From positions 25,371,049 to 25,412,730 of the forward strand of contig NC_068987.1 in NCBI RefSeq assembly GCF_001194135.2: a DNA stretch of 41,682 nucleotides, read 5' to 3'. Position 1 is the first letter of the stretch, and each line of letters begins with the position of its first letter. Positions 761 to 41,682 of the stretch are shown here, piece by piece. The notes beneath the pieces are model-generated. The model searched no databases. It saw nothing but the letters and a program-made list of their open reading frames with translations, and had not been told where the DNA came from. Made by a program: the position numbers and the translations under genes. Source of the stretch: Octopus bimaculoides. Taxonomy: Eukaryota.

Positions 761-777
761 AATATTTAAATATTTAA

Positions 778-992
778 GTCGACGACCTGGCAGAATCGGT
801 AGCAAGCCGGACAAAATGCTTAGCGGTATTTCGTCAGTCTTTACGTTCCGAGTTCAAATTCCACCGCGGTTGACTTTGTCTTTCATCCATTCAGAATCGA
901 CAAAACAAGTACCAGTCAAGTACTGGGGTCGATGCAATTAATTATCCTCTCCCCAAAATTGCAGGCCTTTTGCCTGGAGTAGACAGGATTAA
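778..992 (+). mobile_element. tRNA-derived SINE, family A
   Basis: A-box-like CTGGCAGAATCGG, B-box GAGTTCAAATTCC, core TTTCATCC...CAAGTACCAGTCAAGTACTGGGGTCGATG, tail GTAGACAGGATTAAT. Matches other copies in the window. Confidence 0.85.
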
Positions 993-7700: not shown

Positions 7701-8079
7701 AGTGTGTGTGCCTGTTTCTCTCCTTATAAGTGTATGTGTGTATACGTGCGTGTGTGTGTGTGTGTGTACAAAGAAAGATAGAGCTAGAGAAAGATAGAGC
7801 TAGAAAAAGAGAGAGCTAGAGAGAGAGAGAGAGAGAGAGGGAGAAGAGAGAGAGAGAGAGAGAGATTTGTGGATAGATATGTAGAAAGACAGACACATGG
7901 ATGGACAGACAGACTGACAAACAGATAGATAGATAGAAGATAGATAGATAGATAGATAGATAGATGAATGGACCCACCCTACTACATTTAATCCTGATTA
8001 ACTAAACCCAATCTTTATCTTTTCTTTTCTATAGAATTTGTTCCAAGAATTCTGAAGGAATTATCGATAGCTTTTATTA

Positions 8080-9225
8080 ATGCAGTCACCAGTGCTACTG
8101 ACAAGCACAACAATTACCACCACCCACCGCCACCTGCATCATCATCATCATCACCACCTGCACTGTCGTCACCATCACCTGCATCATAACACAACAAAGC
8201 AAACATCCCTATTACTGCATCAAAGCCACATCACCGCCGAATATCAACAAAACCATTTTTACCGCCACCACAACACCAACTACATTATCATCCCCAAACC
8301 ATACCACTACCACCAAGAATATCAGCGGCATTATAACCTCCCCCCACACATACATACACTCACACTTACACAGCACCATCAGTATTAACATCACCACAAT
8401 GCGCCCCAGTCCCGATGGTGCCACTACTGCGCCATGGACAAGGCACACCACCCTCTCCTGCATGCACCATCTCCACCATCACAACCACCACCATCAACAC
8501 AACCGTCACCACCACAGCCATCACCACCACCACCATCACCGATATCACAACCATCATTATCATTACTACCTCCATTACCATCACCACCGCCATACCAATA
8601 TCTCTATTATAACCCCCACCCAACAGCAATAACAATACCACCACCACCACTACCACCGTTCCGAGTACCACTAATACAACACCATCACCACCACCACCAT
8701 TAGTATGGTTACTAGTATTACTAACCATTTCACTACCACCACCACCATCGTCATCGCCATCAACACAATTATAACCACCGGGGTGCCACCAATGCAAATA
8801 CAGCCATTGCAGTACCACCCACCTCAGTACTACCACTACCATCATCACCACGACCCCCACGACCACCACGACAACGACCACTACCACCGCCGCCACCGCC
8901 ACTACTCCTACAGTAGCTAGTAATATTTCACTACCATCATCGTCACAATTATGAACACCAATAACACCAATTCCGTAATAACCACCACAGAACCACCACC
9001 ACCACAACCACCATCGCCGCCGCCGCCGCCGCCAGCACAATAGCTTGTAATAATAACTAGTTCATCACCACCACCGACAGCATAACCTTTATTACCACCA
9101 CCACCACTACCGCCCTTATTACCGCCACCCAACAAGCACGGTAGCTAGTATTATTAACCATTTCACCACCTATCACTACTACAATACTCAACCACCAACC
9201 AACTAACCAGCCAGTAGTTAGTTAT
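8080..9225. repeat. Degenerate (CAC/ACC/CAT)n low-complexity tract
   Basis: All frames give His-, Thr- or Pro-rich short ORFs broken by stops. No frame is maintained. Confidence 0.8.
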
Positions 9226-21344: not shown

Positions 21345-21534
21345 TTCATTTTTGGTTCAGTCATCCGGACCGCGGTCATGCTGGGGCAGCGTCTTCAAGC
21401 GTTCAGTCGAACAAATCGACCCTAGTGCTGATTTTTAAGTTTGGTGTTCTCTCGGTTTCTATTGCCGAACTGCTCAGTTACAAGGACGTGAACAAACCAA
21501 CGCCGTTTATTAAGCGGTGGTGAAGAAGAAATAC

Positions 21535-21572
<38 letters not shown>

Positions 21573-21577
21573 TACAC

Positions 21578-21614
<37 letters not shown>

Positions 21615-21736
21615 CACTACAGGCTTCTTTCGGTTTCTGGTTACAGATCAACCCACAAGGTGCCGCAATGTGGAACGGAACCTAAGACCACATGGTTGGG
21701 GTGCAAGCTTCTGTACCACACAACCACACCTGCGCC
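21345..21736 (-). mobile_element. Family B SINE with internal microsatellite and a short internal deletion
   Basis: Head CCACACAACCACACCTGCGCC at the right end, (CA)n(TA)n core, tail at the left end. Confidence 0.8.
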
Positions 21737-21907
21737 TGTATTTTATTTCCTTCAAAAAGGATCAAACATGGCTATAAGCACAATTTTGCTTCCTACCTTC
21801 CTCTTATAAATTTGTATTTTTAAGAGGAATATTTATGCTTGGATTTCCTAAGTTGATTTGGACATCAGAATGCTTTCTCTTTTTTGACTGGAATATAGTG
21901 CCTTTAA

Positions 21908-22150: not shown

Positions 22151-22347
22151 TAAATATCTTTAATGATGTATTCTGCTCAACAACGGTAATGGAGACGACT
22201 CAGTTATCCCAATTAGTTGAATATTTGAATGGAGGGAATGCATTGGAAAATACGGTGACAACTGCAGACATGTTTATTTCTTGCTGGTCTTCATCAGTGC
22301 AGCATAGTCCTACAAATACTTATCAGATCGTTGATGAATAAGAGATA

Positions 22348-22773
22348 TACTCTTTACTCTCTCTTTTACTCTTTTACTTGTTTCAGTCATTTCACTGTGG
22401 CCATGCTGGAGCACCGCCTTTAGTCGAGCAAATCGACCCCAGGACTTATTCTTTGTAAGCCTAGTACTTATTCTATCGGTCTCTTTTGCCGAACCGCTAA
22501 GTTACGGGGACGTAAACACACCACCATCGGTTGTCAAGCGATGTTGGGGGGACAGACACAGACACACAAACATATACACACATACATATACATATATATA
22601 TACATATATACGACGGGCTTCTTTCAGTTTCCGTCTACCAGATCCACTCACAAGGCTTTGGTCGATCCAAGGCTATAGTAGAAGACACTTGCCCAAGATG
22701 CCACGCAGTGGGACTGAACCCAGAGCCATGTGGTTGGTAAGCAAGCTACTTACCACACAGCCACTCCGACGCC
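22348..22773 (-). mobile_element. Full-length, low-divergence family B SINE
   Basis: Complete head with A-box TGGCTGTGTGG and B-box GGGTTCAGTCCC on the minus strand, internal microsatellite, (AGTAAAAG)-type tail. Confidence 0.92.
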
Positions 22774-24392
22774 TATCAATATTTTGAGTGAAAAGAGGTG
22801 ACAATTATTCAAGGATGTCTTAAGTATGATATAGTATTAACTTATAATGCAAGCTCAAAATAGGCAGCCACTATACAACAATATTGACTTAAATAAGATA
22901 AGCTCTGTATTCAGCATACAAGATCAAAATAGCCACGATAACATTAAACGCAAGTATTCAACAAAGTGGAAACTTTTGATATGATAATAAAATCTACTTC
23001 AAATTATACTCAGCCGTCTTTAACAAAATTAAAGGTCTCATCATAAAATGTAGTTCGGGGTACATTGTCCACGGAAAGGGGGCGGGTGGTTTATGATAGG
23101 AAAGCCTTTGGCGTCAGATCTGTCTAAACAGGGCTGAGTTGTAGCTAATCAGCTACTACGCGATGTCCAAGTGACAAGATTATAGTCCGTGTAGGCAAAA
23201 GTTTGTTCAGTGTATCTGAAATAGAAATACATGGAAATGTTAGAATAAAGATTACATTGTTTGCGTTATCCATTTTAAAGATTATATATCTATAATAGAC
23301 TGCTAATACACATACATTGATAAAATCATTGGAAACGGTGTTAGCATATTTGTACTTTGCTCATTTTCATTATTGTGGCTGATGTCGTCGTCGTCGCCGT
23401 CGCCGTCGTCGTTTCCGTCAGCTTCATAATCTCTGTCATCATCAACGCTATCTTATTAAGCAGAGCTAAAATGTCAGGCACCTACACCTAAACCTTTGAA
23501 AACTTGGGATATTTGCCCAGAAAATGTTTGCTTCATTAAGCCTTATAGAAAATCAAACATAATTTGTTATGCTTATTGACAAATTTAACCGTGTCAGTAC
23601 AGAGATGGTTCTTTCGCTCTTTTGGAAAAAAAGATCTAATTTTTAAAATGGCTGTGTATTTTCAGAAGTAATTCAAATATAATTTCCTATAATGCTGTGA
23701 AAATTAAGGATAAAAATTTCTAAAAAGGAGGCGTCCGCTCACATAATTAGGTAAAAACGAAGACGTATTTATGACCAAAAGATCTTTTTGTCACTAAACT
23801 CTATGAAAATTAGGTAATTATTTTAGAGAATACTGGCTAAATTATCAAACAAGTCTTTCATTGACTTGTGGCTGAGGGAACACGAAGTACTACCCAGTAT
23901 GTATTTCACTGGATAAATCTTATGATAGATGAACATAGTATTATTATGATCCACTGAGTAATTCAGCCTTTTAATCCAACATAAATTCGAGACGATATAT
24001 AACCCTGATCGATTTGAGTTAGTTTGCTTCGAGATAGTTTTAGATTTTGCTTCCTTCTCATTTGTACTTAAACAAAATTAGGTCATTCTGTAGCTATGAA
24101 AAGACTGACGATTCGATTTTAGATCTTGTGTATTTTGCTTCTTTTTCTTTTTCTTTGTTTTTCTTTTTTCCTGCTTCTAGTTTTCTTCTTTACTGTTTCA
24201 ATTTCGTATCATTGCAGTTCTGTGTTTATCACCAGACATAGTTTTAAGCTTATTATTTTCAACTTCGCTTGATTGTTAATTATGAATCGATGTATTGACT
24301 TGAAGTAGGACTCAAAAGTAAAAAAAGAAAAATGAAAAAGAGGAAAACAACAGAAGCTTCTCTCGAGAACAAATTCCTTTCAGCATTTTTTT

Positions 24393-24787
24393 CTTTTATT
24401 CTTTATCTTTTACTTGCTTCAATCATTTGACTGCGGCCATGCTGGGGCACCGCCTTGAAGAATTTTTAGTCGAATGAATAGACCCTAGTACCTTTTTTAA
24501 GCTTGGTACTCATTCTATTGGAATATTTTGCCGAACCGCTAAGTTACGAGGTCGTGAACACACCAACACCGGATGTCAAGTGGTAGTGGGGGACAAACGC
24601 AAATACACACACACACGCACGAATATATATATATATATACATGACGGGTTCTTTCAGTTTCCGTCTACCAACAAATCCACTAACAAGGCTTTGGTTAGCC
24701 TGAGGCTATAATAGAGGACAGTTGCCCAAGGTTCCACGCAGTGGGACTGAACCCAGGACCATGTGGTTGGGAAGCAAACGTCTTAAC
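24393..24787 (-). mobile_element. Family B SINE, near full length
   Basis: Colinear with 22348-22773, more diverged, lacking the extreme 5' end. Confidence 0.88.
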
Positions 24788-25162
24788 GTATTTTAGAAAC
24801 AAAGAACACCGCTGGTTGGATTATTAACCGTCTATTACTAGTATTTACATTCTTGATACTACGAGGATAACAAGCAAACACTGGTTCAGTTATGATATCG
24901 TGAATATTCATAAATTAAATCGATGTGTTTAAACAAACCTGCAAAAGAATCTCTGACCTGTGTAATGTAAAGTAGCATAAGGTTTCAGCTGCGATCTGGT
25001 TGTTGATGACCCACCCCGTAAGTTAGTTGATAGAATAAATCCTATTTACAATTTGATAACTCGCCAAAATGGATGAAATCACAATTTGTGAAGTTTCAGT
25101 TTAAAATGTGTGTGCATGTGTGTGTGTGTAATGTAGGCATATATCTTTCTCTCTCCCTCACC

Positions 25163-27053: not shown

Positions 27054-27498
27054 ACGGATTTTGTTAAATTCCTTCTTGTCAGCCGCTGGTTAAATGTGAA
27101 AATGATAAACACAAGCAGTGTGTTTTAACTGCGGGACTAAACGCTAGGTTGCATTATAATCTGTGGTTCATTGTTTCCGATGTTACTTTTTACCTAATTA
27201 NNNNNNNNNNNNNNNNNNNNNNNNNNNNNNNNNNNNNNNNNNNNNNNNNNNNNNNNNNNNNNNNNNNNNNNNNNNNNNNNNNNNNNNNNNNNNNNNNNNN
27301 NNNNNNNNNNNNNNNNNNNNNNNNNNNNNNNNNNNNNNNNNNNNNNNNNNNNNNNNNNNNNNNNNNNNNNNNNNNNNNNNNNNNNNNNNNNNNNNNNNNN
27401 NCTTCTTCTTACTATCTGTAGTTTAAACTAACGTTATAAAAACTTTTACTTTTCAGTTAGACTTGAAATTGCAACACTTTGTTTTTGTTGGATACACA

Positions 27499-27555
<57 letters not shown>

Positions 27556-27556
27556 C
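27499..27556. repeat. (ATT)n microsatellite
   Basis: Direct reading. Confidence 0.95.
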
Positions 27557-28469
27557 ATTCCATGTAGAAGTGAAGGGATGTTTTCGTCTGAGAGCTCCGC
27601 GAGTAAAGGTTTCTTAATGTTTTAAACTAAGTTTTATATTTACTGGCGATGAGCCATTTGCAATGTTTACCCGTGTTGCAAGATGGCTGCTTCAGGAATA
27701 ACAGGGAAGTCAGCACAGTGTAACAGCAATAGCCTCAGTAATGTAAATACATACGCCCTCAAATTATTTTCAAACACAAAAAAAAACAACAACAAAAAAG
27801 CAGAATTTAGAATAATCAGATAATGGGAAAGAAATCAAACGTGCAGGAAAATGTTCAGATTTAAACGCCTTCTGTTTACAATGGGAGACACAAACGATAA
27901 TAATGTTGAAAATGTTTATTTGAATGAAAAAACTGTACGAACATCGACAACAAAAACTACCAGGTTCCACCTTTGCAAATCTCATGAGTCAAAAGAAGCG
28001 ACTCATCTTCAGCCAATTCAAGAAAAAAGAGGTAAAGGAAGAAATTCGTTACAAAAGGTATTGCATCTTTACCCGACGAATTTATTGAGAAAAGGTCATG
28101 GAAGAAGGTGAAATACCTCTTTTATTTTTACAAGAAAGAAAAAAATTGGTTTGTTTCTGTATACCCTCGAAAGAAAAATTGAAGGAAACCATAGCCAATG
28201 TACGGCAAGATGCGTTCTCATTGGTTGATAGGAGTGGTCTTTAAGACCGATATTCAGGCAAGGAGTAAGGTAACGCTGATCCACTTCACATCTATAGGCT
28301 ATTGCCATAGTATTTGGCATGGTCTCACATGGTGGCATTGTCGTTGATCATTAGTTTGTCTTTTTGTAGTTACTTGTGCTCACAGTACACACATGACGTA
28401 AGCGCAAACGTGACCAGCAATAATATGTGGTCAGGTCGGTTTGCATCTCCAAGTTCTGTTAACGTTTGA

Positions 28470-28700
28470 TGATTACAAGGCTACTCTGGAGCTACACCTC
28501 ATTGAAGGAGTGGAGAGGCTTTCAATGGGAATGGCAGTGCAAGACAGAAGCCCTAGTTGCTCCACGCGTGGTATAAAAGGCTACATTCAGAAGAGCAAAA
28601 GAAAAACAGCAACAGAAGCAGCTGTACTAATAAGAGGAAGCGCCAGAGATTAAGACAGTGATTGTTTCCAGAGCACATCTGGTCTCTAATCTGAGCATAG
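28470..28700 (+). mobile_element. Possible relic of a non-LTR retrotransposon RLE C-terminus
   Basis: Frameshifted peptides EGVERL / EWQCKTEA / IQKSKRK...GSAR loosely resemble RLE-type ends. By-eye match only. Confidence 0.2.
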
Positions 28701-29759
28701 CTAGATCAGAAGCAAACGAAATTATCACATCTTCGGCGCTGTGAGCACTAGGAATTGATGATGACCAAGAAACCTTCAACACATGATTGGCCAAGAGTTA
28801 CAAAGGTAGGAAACCCTTTATGGTTGTGGAAAAAGAAAAAGCCTCAGGAGATTAGAAGAATATCGGAAACTCTCAGCAATGTAAAAGGGACAAAAGAAAG
28901 AGTGAGATCAGAAGAAAGATAAGCAAAAAGATGGAAATTTTTCCACTCTGTACGGATTTCCTGAAGTTAAATAAGACCCTCACTTAGTTTAAGTACTGGT
29001 CCTCAAAAGGAATGGACTATATATGACTAAGAAGAGTAAGGATGAGTCACAGGTGCCCTTAGACTGAAAACTACATAAGTGGACTATCGACTGCTCAAGG
29101 ATATCTATCACTCACTGTATGTACCTCTGTATGTTGAATAATTTGAGGATTTGACCTCATCAGTAACATTTCAACGTAATATACTTTAATGTTATAGGCT
29201 ATGAGCCTCCCGTGTGAAATATAGTTATATACCCTGATGAATTGAGCCATTGACATTTAAGTATGTGTTTTTCTAAGACATAATGCACAACAGCTGACAA
29301 CACACGAACTGCAAACCTTTCAATCGGTAACCCGGCAACACATTGACTCATCTTTCTAGCATTTGCCATTGTCATAAATCTTGAATATTCCTCTTCAGCT
29401 ACAAAATTATGAAGGTGGTTTGTAGTTGGAGAGAAGCTGGAATTTAAGTACTTTGGTTAATTACTTACAAATGAAAGATTATAATTGGTTGGTTTGGATG
29501 TTAATTATTCTTAAAATGGGTTTTTCTTATTAATTTTTAATTGCATTCATGGCTTTTCCATTCTCCTGAATACTTTCATCAACGAAGTCTGTAAATTAAT
29601 GTTGCAAAGACGTGGCCAATCTTAACTACATTATTTAACATCATCTAATAACGTAAATATTATTTATATTCATCCGTCTGTATGTACATATGTTGTATCG
29701 ACTAATGCAGAGTGTGTAGAACTGAAAAAACATAAATCCCCACCTGCTCCATCTCCGAA

Positions 29760-30255
29760 ATGAATAACGCTCTCATAAAGGAACAGTGGTGTGTTATAAA
29801 CTTTTGCGTCAGACTCGGTAAATCTGTGGATGAAACTATTCAGCTACTACAAGCGGCCTATAGTACAACTTCATTGAAAAAATCTACTGTGTATGACTGG
29901 TATCATAGGTTTGTAGAATTGAGAAATATACATAGAAAGGAAACAATAACAGAGGAAACAGTGGAGGAAGGAGAACAGTGTGTGGAAGGAGAACAGTGTG
30001 TGGAAGGAGTCAAGCAGGAAATGATGGAAGCTGAAAATGAACCAAGCGATGGAGAAAACCTGACAGTTCAGCAAAGGAACACTTCACAAACCGCTGTGCA
30101 AGAGAACAAGAGGGAATTTCATTCATATCGCAGACGAAGGAAGCACAATATAAAACTCACGACTTGGTCGAATATGTTGTGTTTTAAATCAAATGATAAT
30201 TCAGTTCTTTTGAAGTCTTACAAAGAAGCGCTTGATCTATCTTCGAATTATCCTG
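29760..30255 (+). CDS. Coding exon: mariner-transposase-derived N-terminal HTH (HTH_48-like) plus acidic linker and basic patch; candidate domesticated or fusion gene, exon 1
   Basis: EQWCVINFCVRLGKSVDETIQLLQAAYSTTSLKKSTVYDWYHRF fits the mariner HTH pattern EQRxxIKFCxxxGKSxxETxxxLxxAYGxxxLxxxxVYxWxxxF. Open for 165 codons. Donor CTG|GTAAGC at 30255/30256, phase 1. No SGRP, WVPHEL or DDD motifs follow. Confidence 0.75.
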
Positions 30256-30334
30256 GTAAGCTGGTTTTTAGTTGTCCATTTTGATGAATTATCTATGATA
30301 TTAGTTTAATGTAATACGTGTATGCTGTTCTTTA

Positions 30335-30530
30335 TTCCCAGGTTAGTTCTTATTCGTAGATATATGATAAAAGGCATTCCAGTCGTGGCTCTCATGTAAT
30401 TTTGCATCTCAAAGAATTTGTTGTCTAGTGTATCCTCCTTTTCTAAGAACGGTCGAGTGCGATTCGAATGGCATTTTTCTGCTATTTCTAAAAGTTGAAT
30501 GACAATGTAGACAATCCCTCGTTAGCGCGT
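30335..30530 (+). mobile_element. Short interspersed repeat, family C (unclassified)
   Basis: CCAGGTTAG...TATGATAAAAGGCATTCCAGTCGTG...CTGCTATTTCTA matches the motifs at 31280, 31945, 39140, 39370 and 39955. Confidence 0.6.
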
Positions 30531-30655
30531 GTGTATGTGATGTGAGTGTATATGTATGAAGTGACTGTGTGTCTGCATGTGAAGTGAGTGAGTACGTATG
30601 TGTGTGAGTGTAGGGTAAAGTGAGTACATATGTGTGTAAGTGTAGGATAATATGA

Positions 30656-30698
<43 letters not shown>

Positions 30699-31068
30699 GA
30701 CATCAGCATACTTAATAGACTAATCCCAATACATTTTAATTAATGGAAATTACACGATATTACTGATGAGAACACATTATCTTAATGACTAATCCTGGTC
30801 ACAAGACCAATGGTCGAATCTTATGCAGGTCTCTTATTACCTTTCTGTACAGGACATTTAATCCTGTCATTGTTCAATTTTTTTCTCGAGAATAGGTATT
30901 ACAATTATCTGGGGAAGTTGCCTGCCATAGACTGGAGTCTTGATCAAACGCTGATTGGTTTCATATCTCGCCATCATTTTGAAAACAGAACTCAACTTTT
31001 GACTTCTTTCTCTACGTATCTGTTTCATTCCTGACTCGTTTAGTTTAACTGCAATATTATTCAAGAAT

Positions 31069-31107
<39 letters not shown>

Positions 31108-31269
31108 ATGAATAATTATAAATTAACTGTTAATTAATGTAAATGACAAGACATTATAAGTAGGGTGATCATTTGACCGAAATGGAAGAGCGCCGGACTA
31201 AATGACTCGGAGCATTTAGTTTCGTTTTGTTTTGGTTTTCATAACTGTCGGATGTCAAAATTACTAGTC

Positions 31270-31990
31270 GTTGTTGTTGTTTAGCCCCAGGTCAACTCTG
31301 AACGGAAAGACCTATGATCAAAACCCTTCCACTTTTGACTAGCTTTAGGCGTAGCAAGAGAAGAGCAAGAAATAGCAGTTATGCGCAGGCGCATGCTAAG
31401 GAGCAGAAAATTTCCTCTGCCTTGTCATGCCCGTTCAATTGGGAAAGAAACGCTAAAAGAACCTAAGAAATTTCTTTTTACGTTATTGTGACTAATCTGC
31501 ATTTTCATGTCTTATTTCCCTTATTTACGGTAGTATGTGTGGAGGCGCAATGGCCCAGTGGTTAGGGCAGCGGACTCGCGGTCATAGGATCGCGGTTTCG
31601 ATTCCCAGACCGGGCGTTGTGAGTGTTTATTGAGCGAAAACACCTAAAAGCTCCACGAGGCTCCGGCAGGGGATGGTGGCGAACCCTGCTGTACTCTTTG
31701 GCCACAACTTTCTCTCACTCTTACTTCCTGTTTCTGTTGTACCTGTATTTCAAAGGGCCAGCCTTGTCACGCTGAATATCCCCGAGAACTACGTTAAGGG
31801 TACACGTGTCTGTGGAGTGCTCAGCCACTTGCACGTTAATTTCACGAGCAGGCTGTTCCGTTGATCGGATCAACTGGAACCCTCGACGTCGTAAGCGACG
31901 GAGTGCCAACACACACACGGTAGTATGTGATTTAAGGCGTGTTTGGTTGCTATTTCTAGCTGGCCCAGCAACCACATAGATGTTCTCTCC
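31270..31990 (+). mobile_element. Family C repeat interrupted by the young SINE and other sequence
   Basis: 5' motif GTTTAGCCCCAGGTCAACTCTG...TATGATCAAAAC at 31280-31330. 3' motif TTTGGTTGCTATTTCTAGCTGG at about 31942-31965. Confidence 0.55.
31540..31916 (+). mobile_element. Young tRNA-derived SINE with perfect 13-bp TSD (probably one of the published octopus OK/OR families; assignment needs a search)
   Basis: A-box TGGCCCAGTGG, B-box GGTTTCGATTCC, (AC)n tail. TSD ACGGTAGTATGTG at 31527-31539 and 31917-31929. Confidence 0.92.
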
Positions 31991-32306
31991 CTGGCTCACA
32001 TAATTACTAGTAATTAATTGAAGTTGATTTTATTAATTATGCTCTCTCTTCTCCAGAATTTGGCCTTATACTTAGAAGAGAAATAATAATTAATTATCAG
32101 TGAAAAGTCGTTTCAAACAGTTAAGGTTTCTCCGCCTCGAATCTTTGAATAACATGTATGGCATTTGGATATTGATAAACTGAAGACTAAATTAAACTAA
32201 TTAAATAATTTCCGTGCAAGCTATACGGAGAGGCATTAAGGAGAAAACTTAATTTAGAATAAAACTTTACATGTTATCTTCTCCTTCTATATGTGGTACA
32301 TTTCAG

Positions 32307-32457
32307 AATGTCAGATCGACATACTAAGAACGACTACGTGGTTAGCATGCATTGAAGTTGGTCGGTTGGAAGAAGCAGACGTAGAGATGGATAGAGGGTG
32401 GGGGGATCAATTTAATGAAATTTCAAGATTTAATTTGCAAATCGTAAAGAATGTTGG
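32307..32457 (+). CDS. Candidate exon 2 of the HTH-fusion gene (helical, TPR-like segment)
   Basis: Acceptor ...TACATTTCAG|AA at 32306 in phase 1 matches the 30255 donor. Reads ECQIDILRTTTWLACIEVGRLEEADVEMDRGWGDQFNEISRFNLQIVKNV. Donor GG|GTATGC at 32457 is phase 2. Confidence 0.5.
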
Positions 32458-32578
32458 GTATGCTAGGGGTACCCGCTTGTCCGTGAGCACTTGACACATT
32501 TGTGACTTTGTATTCATATCTCCTATTTGATACTTAATTGCATTTGGCTTTATTTATTTGTGGGTGAATGTTGTACAG

Positions 32579-32663
32579 TGTGACAACCACCATTGACCAA
32601 GCTTCGATTCTAAGTCGCGTCTATTACACTTTACATATATCATTTGTCCATCGGAGATGCTGA
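32579..32663 (+). CDS. Candidate terminal exon 3 of the HTH-fusion gene
   Basis: 121-bp intron 32458-32578 ends in TACAG. Phase 2 joins to GVTTTIDQASILSRVYYTLHISFVHRRC-stop (TGA 32661-32663). Spliced CDS is 496+151+85 = 732 nt, 243 aa. Confidence 0.4.
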
Positions 32664-32710
32664 CTGATCATACCGTTACGCATGCTTCGACGAACAATTC
32701 ACTCTTTATA

Positions 32711-32919
32711 AATATTGGCTTCAAATTTTGGCACAAGGCCAGTAAGTTCGAAGGAGAGCGTAAGCCGATTACACTGACACCAGTGTACTTATTTCATCGA
32801 TTCGGAAAGAATGAAAAGCAAAGTGATCCTCGGCGAAATTTGAACTCAGAACGTAAAGATGGACGAAATGCCATTAAGCATTTTGCCTGGCGTGTTAACG
32901 ATTCCGCCACCTCACCGTC
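32711..32919 (-). mobile_element. Family A SINE
   Basis: AATTTTGGCACAAGGCC tail, GAAATTTGAACTCAGAACGTAAAGATGGACGAAATGCC, head at the right end. Confidence 0.85.
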
Positions 32920-33040
32920 TTAACCCTTTTATAAATAGTAATTCTTGTGTTTATAACGGCGATGTTCATAAAAGATGGATGTAGTGGCGATTATTAAATA
33001 TGCTGTGTAAACTAATTTTTTGTTTTTTCATTGCCAAAAT

Positions 33041-33245
33041 TGAGTTCGGTTAGCAGAAATGTTAGAGGGTCGGACAAAGTGCTTGTGATATTTAGTTATA
33101 GCTTTATATGTTTTGAGTCCAAGTCCTTATATGTTTTGAGTCCAAGTCCTTATATGTTTTGAGTCCAAGTCCTTATATGTTTTGAGTCCAATTTCTGGCT
33201 ATGTTTCCTTTTCACACTTTTGTGAACGATAACATAAAGTACTTG
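33041..33245 (+). mobile_element. Degraded family A SINE with tandemly amplified B-box segment
   Basis: Head GCAGAAATGTTAGAGGGTCGGACAAAGTGCTT, then the 23-bp unit TTATATGTTTTGAGTCCAAGTCC x3.8 (33104-33191). Confidence 0.65.
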
Positions 33246-33497
33246 TCGATTTAATATTCCTATATAGTGTGAATTTCGAATTTACATAATTACTCATGCA
33301 CTGAATGACTGCGAGGTGTGAGAATGCGGTTTGCACAACTCGAAGGATGTGGAAATTGACGATTAGTTTATCGAATTACCGATTGAAACCTTATCAATGT
33401 GAATGATTAGAAGTGAAGTTGTTGCTAATAAATAACTTAACAATAGAGCATTAGCCTAAAATGAATAGAGGTATACTGCTGTTGTAGGTAATATATT

Positions 33498-33803
33498 TCA
33501 TCTTTTATTTGTTTCAGCCATGCTGGGGCACCGCTTTGAAAGGTTTTAATCGAACAAATTGACTCAAAGGTTTATTCTATTGGTCTCTTTTACTGAACTG
33601 CTAATTAAAAGTGACGTAAATAAACCAACACAGTTCGTAAAGTGGTGACGGGAGGCAAACACAAAGACGCGCGCGCACACGTACACATACGGCGGGTTTC
33701 TTTCAGTCTCCATCTATCTAATCCACTCACAAGAATTTGCTCGGTCTGGAGCTATTTTAAAAGACACTAGCGCAAGGTGTCACGCAGTGGGATTGAACTA
33801 AGA
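33498..33803 (-). mobile_element. Family B SINE, 5' end lost in the assembly gap
   Basis: Colinear with other family B copies up to CACGCAGTGGGATTGAAC, then the N-gap 33804-34193. Confidence 0.8.
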
Positions 33804-35720: not shown

Positions 35721-36190
35721 GGGCAAGGCGCTGGCAGAATCGTTAGCGAGTCGGACAAAATGCTTACTATCATTCCATCCGACTCTTTTTTGATTCTTAT
35801 TTCTTTATTGTCCACAAGGGGCTAAACATAGAGGGGACAAACAAGGACAGACAAAGGGGTTAAGTCGATTACATCGACCCCAGTGCGTAACTGGTACTTA
35901 ATTTCTCGACCCCGAAAGGATGAAAGGCAAAGTTGACCTCGGCGGAATTTGAACTCAGAACGTAACGGCAAACGAAATACCGCTAAGCATTTCGTCCGGA
36001 GTGCTAGCGTTTTTGCCAGCTCGCCGCCTCTTTACGTTCTGAATTCAGATTCCGTCGAAGTCGAAATTGTCTTTCATCATTTCGGGTTCGATGAAATAAG
36101 TACCAGTCAAGCACTGGGGTCGATGTCATTGACTAACCCCTGCCCTAACATTCCCGGCTTTGTACCTACAGTAGTAAGCACTATTATTAT
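35721..36190 (+). mobile_element. Family A SINE (outer element of a nested pair)
   Basis: Head 35721-35788 and remainder 36029-36190 rejoin into one contiguous copy. Confidence 0.85.
35789..36028 (-). mobile_element. Family A-type SINE with an alternative 3' tail, inserted antiparallel into the previous element
   Basis: Head GGCGGCGAGCTGGC ends at 36028 on the minus strand. The tail (rc of GATTCTTATTTCTTTATTGTCCACAAGGGGCTAAAC...) differs from other A copies. Short TSD (C)TCTTT at 35783-35788 and 36028-36033. Confidence 0.88.
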
Positions 36191-38340: not shown

Positions 38341-38409
38341 TTGCATCAATTCTCGGTGTGACTAAAACTGTATAGCTAGGACTATATAGCTATTATACAG
38401 CGTCTTTCC

Positions 38410-39051
38410 TTACTCTTTTACTCTTTTACTTGTTTCAGTCATTTGACTGCGGCCATGCTGGAGCACCGCCTTTAGTCGAGCAAATCGACCCCAGGACTTA
38501 TTCTTTGTAAGCCTAGTACTTATACTATCGGTCTCTTTTGCCGAACCGACAAGTTACGGGGACGTAAACACACCACCATCGGTTGTCAAGCGATGTTGGG
38601 GGGACAAACACAGACACACAAACACACACACATATACAAATAAATATATACGACAGGCTTCTTTCAGTTTCCGTCTACCAAATCCACTCACANNNNNNNN
38701 NNTGCTGGAGCACCGCCTTTAGTCGAGCAAATCGACCCCAGGACTTATTCTTTGTAAGCCTAGTACTTATACTATCGGTCTCTTTTGCCGAACCGACAAG
38801 TTACGGGGACGTAAACACACCACCATCGGTTGTCAAGCGATGTTGGGGGGACAAACACAGACACACAAACACACACACATATACAAATAAATATATACGA
38901 CAGGCTTCTTTCAGTTTCCGTCTACCAAATCCACTCACAAGGCTTTGGTCGGCCCGTGGCTATAGTAGAAGACACTTGCCCAAGGTACCAAGCAGTGGGA
39001 ATGAACCCGAAACCATGTGGTTGGTAAGCAAGCTACTTACTACACAGCCAC
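38410..39051 (-). mobile_element. Family B SINE, low divergence; shown with a 237-bp duplication across a 10-N gap
   Basis: 38456-38692 is identical to 38703-38939, including private variants. The true element is about 400 bp. Confidence 0.9.
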
Positions 39052-39056
39052 TATGA

Positions 39057-40220
39057 TTTATAAATGATTTGAGGGAGATTTAGCTATGCTGGTCTTGTTG
39101 TTGGAAATAGTGGTGCTGTAGTTAGTATTATTGATGGTGTGGTTGTTTAGTCGCAGGTCAGCCTTGATTGACCAGATGTATGATCAAAGGCGTTGCTGCC
39201 ATGACCATTTCCTCCCTATTCCCGAGTATCAAATACTTAGAAATACATTATGTAACGTGTCACCTTTTGAAGCCAAGGGGGATTAATTTAAAAGAGATTT
39301 GAGATCTATTTCTAGCAGGTTATCTATGCAGAGGCTGTATCATTCACTTGGAGTGTTATTTTTGCTATTATTTAGCCCTAGGTCAATCTGGCTCAAGTAG
39401 GTTTACGGTCAAAGACATTCCACAGTGTCTTCTTAGGAAAAGTGTTTAGGATTATATTATCTAATGTGTCCATTTTTCAAAGACAGTATGAAGAATAGGC
39501 GCAGGAGTGGCTGTGTGGTAAGTAGCTTGCTTACCAAGAACCAACATGGTTCTGAGTTCAGTCCCACTGCGTGACACCGTGGGAAGGTGTCTTCTACTAT
39601 AGCCTCGGGCCGACCAAAGCCTTGTGAGTGGATTTGGTAGACGGAAACTGAAAGAAGCTCGTCGTATATATGTATATATATGTATGTGTGTGTATATGTT
39701 TGTGTGTCTGTGTTTGTCCCCCCACCATCGCTTGACAACCGATGCTGGTGTGTTTACGTCCCCGTAACATAGTGGTTCGGCAAAAGAGGCCGATAGAATA
39801 AGTACTAGGCTTACGAAGAATAAGTCCTGGGGTCGATTTGCTCGACTAAAGGTGGTGCTCCAGCATGGCCCCAGTCAAATGACTGAAACAAGTAAAAGAG
39901 TAAAAGAGTAAATAGAGAATTCAATGTTAGACACATGAAAGAAAGTGTTGCTGTTATTTAGCGCTAAGTCAGCCTTGATAGAGTAGACTTAGGATCAAAG
40001 CCCTTCCTATCATGACCATCCGTCGTTTTCAAACAATATGAACTCTGGATGTACAGAGTATAATTTGCACGAGATTTTGGTTACTATTTGTTGCTGCGCC
40101 CGAGATCAAACAAATCAAAGGACTACGATCAAAATTATTCTTGCCGTGACCACCTCCTTATTCAAGATCATAGCGTATATAATTTGACATAGTTTTGGTT
40201 GCTATTTGTAGCAGGTCAAT
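39057..40220 (+). mobile_element. Cluster of degraded family C repeats (about 4 copies) with a family B SINE inserted among them
   Basis: Recurring TTTAG(C/T)C...GGTCA...TGATCAAA and (G/C)TATTT(C/G)TAGCAGG motifs at about 39140, 39305, 39370, 39955, 40130 and 40200. Confidence 0.55.
39498..39912 (+). mobile_element. Full-length family B SINE
   Basis: GGCGCAGGAGTGGCTGTGTGG head, B-box GAGTTCAGTCCC, internal (TA/TG)n, tail GAAACAAGTAAAAGAGTAAAAGAGTAAA. Confidence 0.92.
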
Positions 40221-40572: not shown

Positions 40573-40774
40573 TTCAATAATCTTTTCTACTAAAGGCAAA
40601 AGGCCTGAAATTTGGTGGGAGGAGACTAGTCGATTGCATCGACCTCAGTGTCTCACTGGTACTTAATTTATCGACCCCATAAGTATGAAAGGCAAAGTTG
40701 ACCTCGGCGGAATTTAAACTCAGAACGTAAAACATTTTTGCCCGGCATGCTAACGATTCTGCCAGCTCGCCGCC
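40573..40774 (-). mobile_element. Family A SINE with a short internal deletion
   Basis: ATAATCTTTTCTAC tail to GCCAGCTCGCCGCC head. Lacks the GACGAAATxCCGCTAAG segment. Confidence 0.88.
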
Positions 40775-40859
40775 TAATAACATTTAATCCAATTATAATG
40801 GGATTTTTTTTTCAAATATCGAAAGGCTACGAGGGTCCATCTGAGTGAAATAGGAATCA

Positions 40860-40896: not shown

Positions 40897-41159
40897 ACTA
40901 ATCATTTTATTTCTTTCATTTAAATCTTCCTTTCAGTAATCCCCCCCCCTAACACCTTTCCCTTTTCTCAATCATCACTTCACTGCTTATATCTGCTTTT
41001 CCTTCCATATATCTCCTTTGTTCTCCTTTCACTAATCTCCCCTTCTTCTACTTAGCTTTCACCGCTCCTCCTAATTTACTCCGCTTCTTTCTTTCTTTCG
41101 TCTTATCCTTTTTACTTTCTCTTCAACCTTCCACACCGGTTTCTTTTACTGCCGGTCCA

Positions 41160-41530
41160 TCTTCACGAACTACAGTTCGACAAACACCAGCACCACATAC
41201 ACTACCACTACCGATACCGACACCACCACCACCACCACCACCACTGCAACAACGACAACAACGAGCAACAATACCACCATCACCATCAACAGTAGCTATT
41301 TCTAACACTGCAGCTACCCACCACCACCACTACCACCAACACCACCACCACCTCCTCCACGACAACAACAACAACCAACGCTAACACTACAACGTCTACC
41401 ACAACAACTACACAAATAACAACACATATATCCTCCCACCACATACCAGCCATCAACAACGACTACACCTCGAACAAAAACTGCTACCGAAACCCCCATC
41501 GATGCCAACATCAGCAACACCACTACCATC
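41160..41530. repeat. Degenerate (ACC/ACA)n low-complexity tract
   Basis: Thr-, Pro- or His-rich in different frames, each broken by stops. Confidence 0.75.
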
Positions 41531-41682
41531 TAATTGATACTATACTAATGAACTATAAACGCAAAATAAATAACAGTTTGATGAATGAATGAAGGAGGTG
41601 GTTCTCGGTGCCCCCAACACTTCATAAACTGGATAGATTCCAGTATTGATTTAGGGCGGGGAGCATCATACGTTGACCATCG

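Follow-up and report, generated by a model that had tools for sequence, protein, structure and literature searches.

Does an open reading frame (ORF) that begins with a mariner-type DNA-binding motif and runs into a consensus 5′ splice site belong to a transposon, to a transposon relic, or to a host gene? The ORF in question lies in a 41,682-nt stretch of the Octopus bimaculoides genome (contig NC_068987.1, positions 25,371,049 to 25,412,730 of the forward strand), hereafter called the window. It starts with an ATG at 29760 on the + strand and extends to 30284, giving 174 codons (182 counted stop to stop), and it is the sole long open frame in the 41.7-kb window outside microsatellite-like low complexity; at this composition, a window should contain on average 0.03 stop-free runs of 182 codons or more, and 6 of 200 shuffled sequences had one. 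The frame is open to codon 165, where the sequence reads CCTG/GTAAGC at 30255/30256. Because an in-frame stop (29733-29735) precedes the ATG, with no AG between the two, the ATG at 29760 is the earliest possible start. A sequence-only reading of this DNA had regarded the ORF as exon 1 of a three-exon gene encoding a lineage-specific protein of 243 amino acids (aa), in which a mariner helix-turn-helix (HTH) was grafted onto a non-transposase protein. The results below lead to a different view: the segment 29760..30255 (+; ATG, 165 codons plus 1 nt, phase 1) is probably the first coding exon of an unannotated, fixed, and apparently single-copy gene that arose from a domesticated mariner (Mos1-type) transposase, and its origin in the N-terminal DNA-binding region of the transposase extends over the whole exon.

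The N-terminal part of the predicted protein matches the mariner HTH in both sequence profile and predicted fold. The Pfam profile HTH_48 (PF17906, 'HTH domain in Mos1 transposase') was detected at residues 12-51 (29793-29912) with an E-value of 8e-6 and 26.3 bits, above the curated cut-off of 24.1; the profile check that the sequence-only reading had proposed thus bears out its assignment of residues ~8-52 to a mariner N-terminal HTH. AlphaFold2, run with a small alignment, predicted a confident three-helix bundle over residues 1-60 (predicted local distance difference test score, pLDDT, 80-94) with helices at 3-18, 23-37, and 41-66, and low confidence elsewhere. The best Foldseek matches in the PDB were the Mos1 transposase (3HOS, 5HOO, 4U7B, and 3HOT) and, second-best, the DNA-binding domain of SETMAR (7S03), with root-mean-square deviations of 1.0-1.2 Å over 43-44 columns and probabilities of 0.94-0.99, where the E-values are weak given the small size of the domain. 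A phmmer search of the PDB returned spurious designed-repeat matches only, and no SETMAR chain. We place the first HTH at residues ~5-60 (29772..29939, +). In an exhaustive HMMER search of 1.84 billion representative proteins, 120 matches were obtained, and all but two of them, P0001 and P0002, cover residues ~5-60 only.

P0001 identifies the same locus in a second species. When the 243-aa model was searched against 5.8 billion proteins, this protein (174 aa, 80% identity) was the only one returned; it matched exon 1 only and is 83% identical across all 165 exon-1 residues. The contigs encoding it (L001, L002, and L022), from three runs of one project, align collinearly to positions 27794-30309 of the window (2.5 kb, of which more than 1.3 kb is non-coding DNA upstream of the ORF), with no boundary resembling a terminal inverted repeat (TIR) on either side. 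Because the flanks align well past the ORF, this is the orthologous locus of a related species (hereafter the sister species), not a transposon copy. The identity between the window and the sister species is ~0.72-0.78 in the distal flank, 0.82-0.95 in the proximal 800 nt upstream, 0.91 in the exon, and 0.949 in the first HTH. The exon divergence of 9.0% is far below the 22.4% of the distal flank (Fisher p 7e-9), and also below that of the proximal flank (p 0.009). The sole exon indel in any comparison is an in-frame 18-nt duplication in the window, whereas every flank has indels.

P0002 (178 aa; HMMER E 1e-15; 56% identity over residues 6-74), which together with P0001 accounts for the only close matches among the 120, represents a second lineage. 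Its cluster comprises five near-identical proteins from ~20 runs with three sequence types (L003; L004-L013; L015-L021), presumably three species. Of the public runs that supplied the comparison sequences, ERR123703xx and ERR129213xx belong to accession blocks given as PacBio DNA runs in published genome notes. Only 145 nt coding for the HTH still align to the window, at 70% identity, so the split between the two lineages is deep. The protein is therefore not lineage-specific, since its closest relative beyond the sister species belongs to a lineage as distant as this. The first HTHs of both lineages are reciprocal nearest neighbours (67-73% identity), with next-best identities to any other match of at most 51% for the window and at most 62% for P0002, and a derived RFVE[LM]R, in place of RFKEGRE, is common to both. 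The second-lineage ORF has the identical length, 165 codons plus 1 nt, and its end at CCGG/GTAAGT lies in the same phase as in the window; directly after this exon end, the predicted proteins of the lineage differ in sequence and length. Across the five sequence types, the frame is intact. A profile search with both lineages and a metagenome scan revealed no further family members, only ordinary degenerate mariners, among them full-length copies on the metagenome contigs L024-L027 (L024 1818-2900 and L026 1834-2900, with in-frame stops), which are probably host DNA. The L024 and L026 copies were used as a ruler for the transposase domains. Their first HTH has the motif LKKSTVYDW in common with that of the window gene.

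We then asked what the remaining 110 codons of the exon encode. According to the sequence-only reading, the similarity ends where transposases continue with E.GR...D..RSGRP, and this break is evident in the alignments: from residue 50 (50-60) the window reads RFVELRNIHRKE, where transposases have RFKEGRE..D..RSGRP, the linker motif GRE..D..RSGRP is missing, and BLASTP places an 8-residue gap at RSGRPSTS. The alignments nevertheless continue on the far side of the gap. With hhalign, the gene family aligned to 16 mariner N-termini over window residues 4-156 and transposase residues 11-132 (E 1e-22), including both HTHs. With BLASTP, residues 12-140 of P0002 aligned to residues 2-127 of a full-length mariner ORF (31% identity, E 1e-12), and the alignment covers both HTHs up to the ..FVLRQLTTD motif. 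In addition, a hidden Markov model (HMM) was trained on 20 mariner N-termini restricted to their linker and second HTH, and the tails alone were searched and compared with 2000 shuffles. The tail of the second lineage scored 8.3 bits (1 of 2000 shuffles as high) in a collinear alignment of HMM positions 30-74 with tail positions 31-75 (REERPTTVRELTEVLHGSQGSAREFASVKVGMSTVGPRLQPKMV). The sister species scored 7.3 bits (4 of 2000), with TETGETVKKVEQCV opposite TSRTDENIEKVRDLI; the same segment of P0001 pairs with TSRITEMIEKVQQLI of the transposase, with a gap of 8-10 residues at the RSGRPSTS position. The window tail alone, which the duplication interrupts, reached 2.9 bits, a score that is not significant (142 of 2000 shuffles as high).

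Since the tail follows the mariner linker and second HTH collinearly, exon 1 would represent the entire mariner DNA-binding region, ending shortly before the first catalytic aspartate. As far as these alignments can tell, the 110 codons after the first HTH are a degenerate mariner linker and second HTH, not foreign sequence, and the idea of an HTH grafted onto a non-transposase protein finds no support, with no host-derived part found. The second HTH appears to be clear in the second lineage; the sister species retains a detectable vestige, and the window copy is vestigial as well. The earlier statement that there is no second HTH applies to the window copy taken alone but not to its relatives. 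In the window, an acidic relic of the inter-HTH linker (ETITEETVEEGEQCV..., 29940..30005, +) lacks the RSGRP motif and contains the 18-nt tandem duplication (29966-29983 and 29984-30001), which is not found in the sister species. The strongly degenerate second-HTH region with the exon end follows at 30057..30254 (+), where hhalign pairs TAVQENKREFHSYRRRRKH with the transposase HTH2 and the AlphaFold2 confidence is below 50. A basic patch in this region, RRRRK (30129-30143), had been suggested as a possible nuclear localization signal; it is kept as RRRKR in the sister species but is not present in the second lineage.

On the sequence evidence, we favour a real 5′ splice site at 30255/30256, because the donor is kept, the frame and length diverge after the exon end, indels other than the in-frame duplication are confined to the flanks, and no poly(A) signal lies nearby. 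The predicted donor (GTAAGC, consensus, 30256..30261, +), on which the sequence-only reading had also remarked, stands in the same context, CCTG/GTAAGC, in the sister species, and a frame-breaking 7-nt indel relative to that species occurs directly 3′ of it. No AATAAA or ATTAAA is found for 1.9 kb past the read-through stop. A read-through, single-exon protein of 174 aa was considered and rejected, since the post-donor tails differ between species in both frame and length and no poly(A) signal follows.

Selection differs between the lineages. In the second lineage (L003, L004, and L015), the ratio of nonsynonymous to synonymous substitution rates (dN/dS) is 0.10-0.12 for the whole exon, 0-0.12 for the HTH, and 0.12-0.22 for the tail. 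The 24 substitutions are distributed 4/4/16 over the codon positions, and none of 20,000 neutral simulations had as many synonymous changes (p <5e-5), demonstrating strong purifying selection. Between the lineages, dN of the HTH is 0.25 and dS is saturated. For the window exon, some constraint is suggested by its lower divergence than the flanks, the lack of any frameshift, and the tail, which has diverged past recognition and is still open; 108 random codons of the same composition would remain free of stops with a probability of 2e-4. We read these data as long-term maintenance of the reading frame with relaxed constraint in the lineage of the window, where a recent loss of function is also conceivable.

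Several observations weigh against a functional gene derived from a domesticated transposase. Between the window and the sister species, dN/dS is ~0.5 and not significantly below 1 (synonymous excess p 0.064), the 43 substitutions are spread evenly over the codon positions (19/11/13), and the frame would survive by chance in 14% of cases. The protein collections are patchy, and the window's own ORF, which appears to be unannotated, was found in none of the sources searched; nor was any downstream exon identified. The second-HTH assignment rests on sequence, and AlphaFold2 gives no folded second HTH, even for the better-preserved P0002. Finally, the orthology of the two lineages is deduced from sequence comparison, as opposed to an independent capture of the domain from one mariner subfamily. 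The even spread of substitutions and the missing record, along with the loss of RSGRP, the decay of the second HTH, and the 18-nt duplication, would suit a window copy that is a relic, either of a formerly domesticated gene or of an old fixed mariner fragment, unselected in this lineage and open by chance. We consider such a relic unlikely. Neither species of the pair has a broken frame, and the single indel is in-frame, compared with several indels in the flanks; the joint chance of this outcome under neutrality is roughly 0.02 (0.14 for stops times an estimated 0.1-0.2 for frameshifts). A relic also fits poorly with an exon far less diverged than the distal flank, with a tail that is unrecognizable between the lineages yet open, and with the conserved donor sequence.

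More doubtful still, and in our view improbable, is the 243-aa protein made of three exons (29760-30255, 32307-32457, and 32579-32663), with the HTH fused to host-derived sequence. The model has its attractions: exon 2 (candidate, 32307..32457, +) and exon 3 (candidate, 32579..32663, +, ending in TGA) keep the frame, have GT/AG at their borders, and come with a reasonable polypyrimidine tract; the donor of exon 1 is conserved; and neither downstream exon is repeated within the window. The full-length query, however, matched exon 1 only in the 5.8 billion proteins, exons 2 and 3 contain no Pfam domain, and the tail of exon 1 appears to be transposase-derived instead of host-derived. Moreover, among the 641 AG dinucleotides downstream of the donor, 214 are followed by at least 20 open codons in the required phase and 36 by at least 50; because these 36 alternatives are equally open, an in-frame chain to a stop carries no evidential weight. 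Exons 2 and 3 are thus possible but unsupported. A copy of a dispersed repeat (32761-32923) begins ~100 nt after the stop of the proposed exon 3.

Two contigs of the second lineage, L014 (1049-1409) and L023 (1038-1177), match the others at more than 99% identity across the upstream region and exon 1 and then depart from the common intron, L014 2 nt and L023 7 nt past the exon end, with tails that match nothing fetched. These variants could be aberrant RNAs, structural variants, or assembly chimeras. The L014 tail was also considered as a candidate exon 2 and was set aside, as it had no match in the window by tblastx or blastn.

The hallmarks of a transposon were sought around the exon. A TIR search of 27400-33800 found no credible inverted pair around the ORF, just low-complexity or chance pairs. 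When 125 fetched HTH_48 proteins and two full-length mariner ORFs were used as tblastn queries against the whole window, matches were confined to 29736-30266, with no remnant of the DD34D catalytic domain (Transposase_1) anywhere in the window, including the 11.4 kb downstream; both absences agree with the sequence-only reading. There is no second copy of the exon within the 41.7 kb, each species or sample has one close sequence type, and no copies of intermediate identity occur among the 1.8 billion representative proteins. These results support a fixed transposase-derived coding exon, apparently single-copy, rather than a decaying or multi-copy mariner. The remaining explanation, that it is part of a mobile element, either a multi-copy mariner derivative that is non-autonomous or the first exon of an autonomous mariner with introns, deserves almost no credence, even though HTH_48 is otherwise typical of transposons and introns occur in some Tc1/mariner elements, given the lack of detectable TIRs, of a catalytic domain, and of diverged copies in the protein collections, the flanks that are orthologous well past the ORF in both lineages, and the strong purifying selection between species.

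The gene favoured here, with a mariner-derived first coding exon, can be outlined as follows. Only the N-terminal DNA-binding region of the transposase, namely the first HTH, the linker, and the second HTH, would have been retained with its own start codon, and the gene would be cut ~10-25 residues past this region, before the first catalytic aspartate, at the 5′ splice site. In the second lineage the whole bipartite domain would have remained recognizable under strong purifying selection, and in the lineage of the window RSGRP would have been deleted, the second HTH would have decayed to acidic and basic stretches, and the 18-nt duplication would have arisen under relaxed constraint. The protein would probably bind DNA sequence-specifically through its well-preserved first HTH and may act as a transcriptional regulator or repressor at or near sites derived from mariner TIRs; alternatively, it may act as a competitor of active transposase from the cognate family. 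Because the lineage of the window has lost the minor-groove linker motif and the second HTH, its protein is predicted to have a weaker or altered specificity. Transcription of the locus, use of the donor, and the identity of the downstream exons are likewise what we infer from this architecture. A broader proposal can be offered only tentatively, and we would not rely on it: an old mariner domestication common to two deeply diverged mollusc lineages, possibly octopods and decapodiforms, in which the DNA-binding first exon splices into downstream exons.

Genes of this kind, domesticated transposases and host-transposase fusions, are already established. The fusion genes SETMAR (primate SET-Hsmar1) and KRABINER (bat KRAB-Mlmar1) have been described by Cosby et al. 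(bioRxiv 10.1101/2020.05.07.082677), and the structure of the SETMAR DNA-binding domain has been determined (PMC9062482). As in SETMAR and KRABINER, a mariner DNA-binding domain is fixed at one locus as host coding sequence, and a splice site, here a predicted one, lies at the border of the transposase-derived part; the fold of the first HTH is also that of SETMAR, as the second-best PDB match (7S03) illustrates, although no match to SETMAR was obtained at the sequence level by phmmer against the PDB. In both Mos1 and SETMAR, the first HTH contacts the inner part of the TIR (3HOS, 7S03; PMC9062482). The arrangement differs, however. In SETMAR and KRABINER the transposase is C-terminal, entered via an acceptor upstream of its ORF, and whole with the catalytic domain, whereas in the window gene the transposase part is N-terminal with a start codon of its own, stops short of the catalytic core, and has a donor at its end. 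A SET or KRAB host domain was not found, and Pfam detected no SET domain on the model or the neighbouring ORFs.

The Caenorhabditis F-box A2 family carries a captured Mos1-type HTH (PMC12062965), and there, as here, the first tri-helical HTH is the only mariner part to be well preserved in the host protein; unlike the window gene, which has apparently one copy and no F-box, that family is multicopy and has F-box and FTH domains. Autonomous mariners (Mos1 and the L024-L027 copies) are collinear with the window gene over the N-terminal 130 residues and have the LKKSTVYDW motif in common with it, but the gene is without TIRs, the DD34D domain, and the RSGRP linker, and its locus is apparently single-copy and is orthologous. 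The Pax paired domain, HTH-psq, and CENP-B-like genes also retain a transposase DNA-binding module without catalysis, presumably in a regulator, but are of pogo/Tc1-type origin. A survey of transposon-derived transcription factors that included Octopus and other molluscs listed pogo-, hAT-, and THAP-type genes, and no mariner HTH_48-derived gene (PMC10027918).

New transcription factors have repeatedly arisen from domesticated transposase DNA-binding domains, and the documented mariner cases are few (SETMAR, KRABINER, and the nematode F-box family), with none found from molluscs. The locus would join these cases as an unannotated gene of unusual layout, in which the transposase exon is N-terminal, brings its own start, and ends at a donor, and it suggests that short first exons of such a kind are missed by current cephalopod gene annotation. 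It presents two evolutionary states of one gene, a constrained bipartite domain and a domain in which only the first HTH is preserved, and thus provides a usable case for asking which part of the mariner DNA-binding domain a host needs. If the broader proposal of a domestication common to both lineages is correct, the gene would become the first regulator of mariner (HTH_48) origin to be described in Lophotrochozoa, the donor at the domain border would be the reverse of the usual transposase capture via an upstream acceptor, and the two lineages would form a natural contrast, with both HTHs strongly constrained in one and the second HTH decayed in the other.

Upstream of the exon, a conserved block (28995..29759, +) with a 60-nt sliding identity to the sister species of 0.82-0.95, against 0.72-0.75 farther upstream, is a putative promoter and 5′ untranslated region. 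Within it, positions 29655-29714, ~50-100 nt upstream of the ATG, reach 95% identity, above most of the exon, and include the TATA-like TATTTATAT, making this segment a candidate core promoter.

The putative intron contains an insertion resembling a short interspersed nuclear element (SINE) at 31528..31929 (+), including the target-site duplication. The insert itself (31540-31917) is 378 nt long and G+C-rich with a (CA)n tail, and is flanked by an exact 12-bp target-site duplication, CGGTAGTATGTG, that occurs exactly twice in the window, with 0 occurrences expected. The tRNA (ARAGORN) and Rfam scans of the window and of this insertion found nothing; the insertion has A-box- and B-box-like motifs, TGGCCCAGTGG and GGTTTCGATTCC.

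Dispersed repeats are found at several other positions. One family has at least 6 copies, 65-97% identical (21428-21806, 22338-22784, 24389-24798, 33517-33799, 38405-39053, and, on the - strand, 39464-39874), each followed by a microsatellite, and is probably the main SINE of the genome. A second family comprises 774-912 (-), 1075-1210, 35861-36029, and 40659-40775, in addition to the copy at 32761-32923 mentioned above. Two 237-nt copies that are 100% identical (38456-38692 and 38703-38939) lie on either side of a 10-N gap (38693-38702), which suggests a duplication introduced during assembly or gap closing and not a biological one. At 8071-9144 and 40953-41589, both strands have stretches without stops, the longest of 231 codons, that consist of CAC/CAT/ACC-type repeats with His-, Thr-, and Pro-rich translations; they are low-complexity DNA mimicking ORFs. 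A 23-nt unit, TTATATGTTTTGAGTCCAAGTCC, is present in four tandem copies at 33104-33195.

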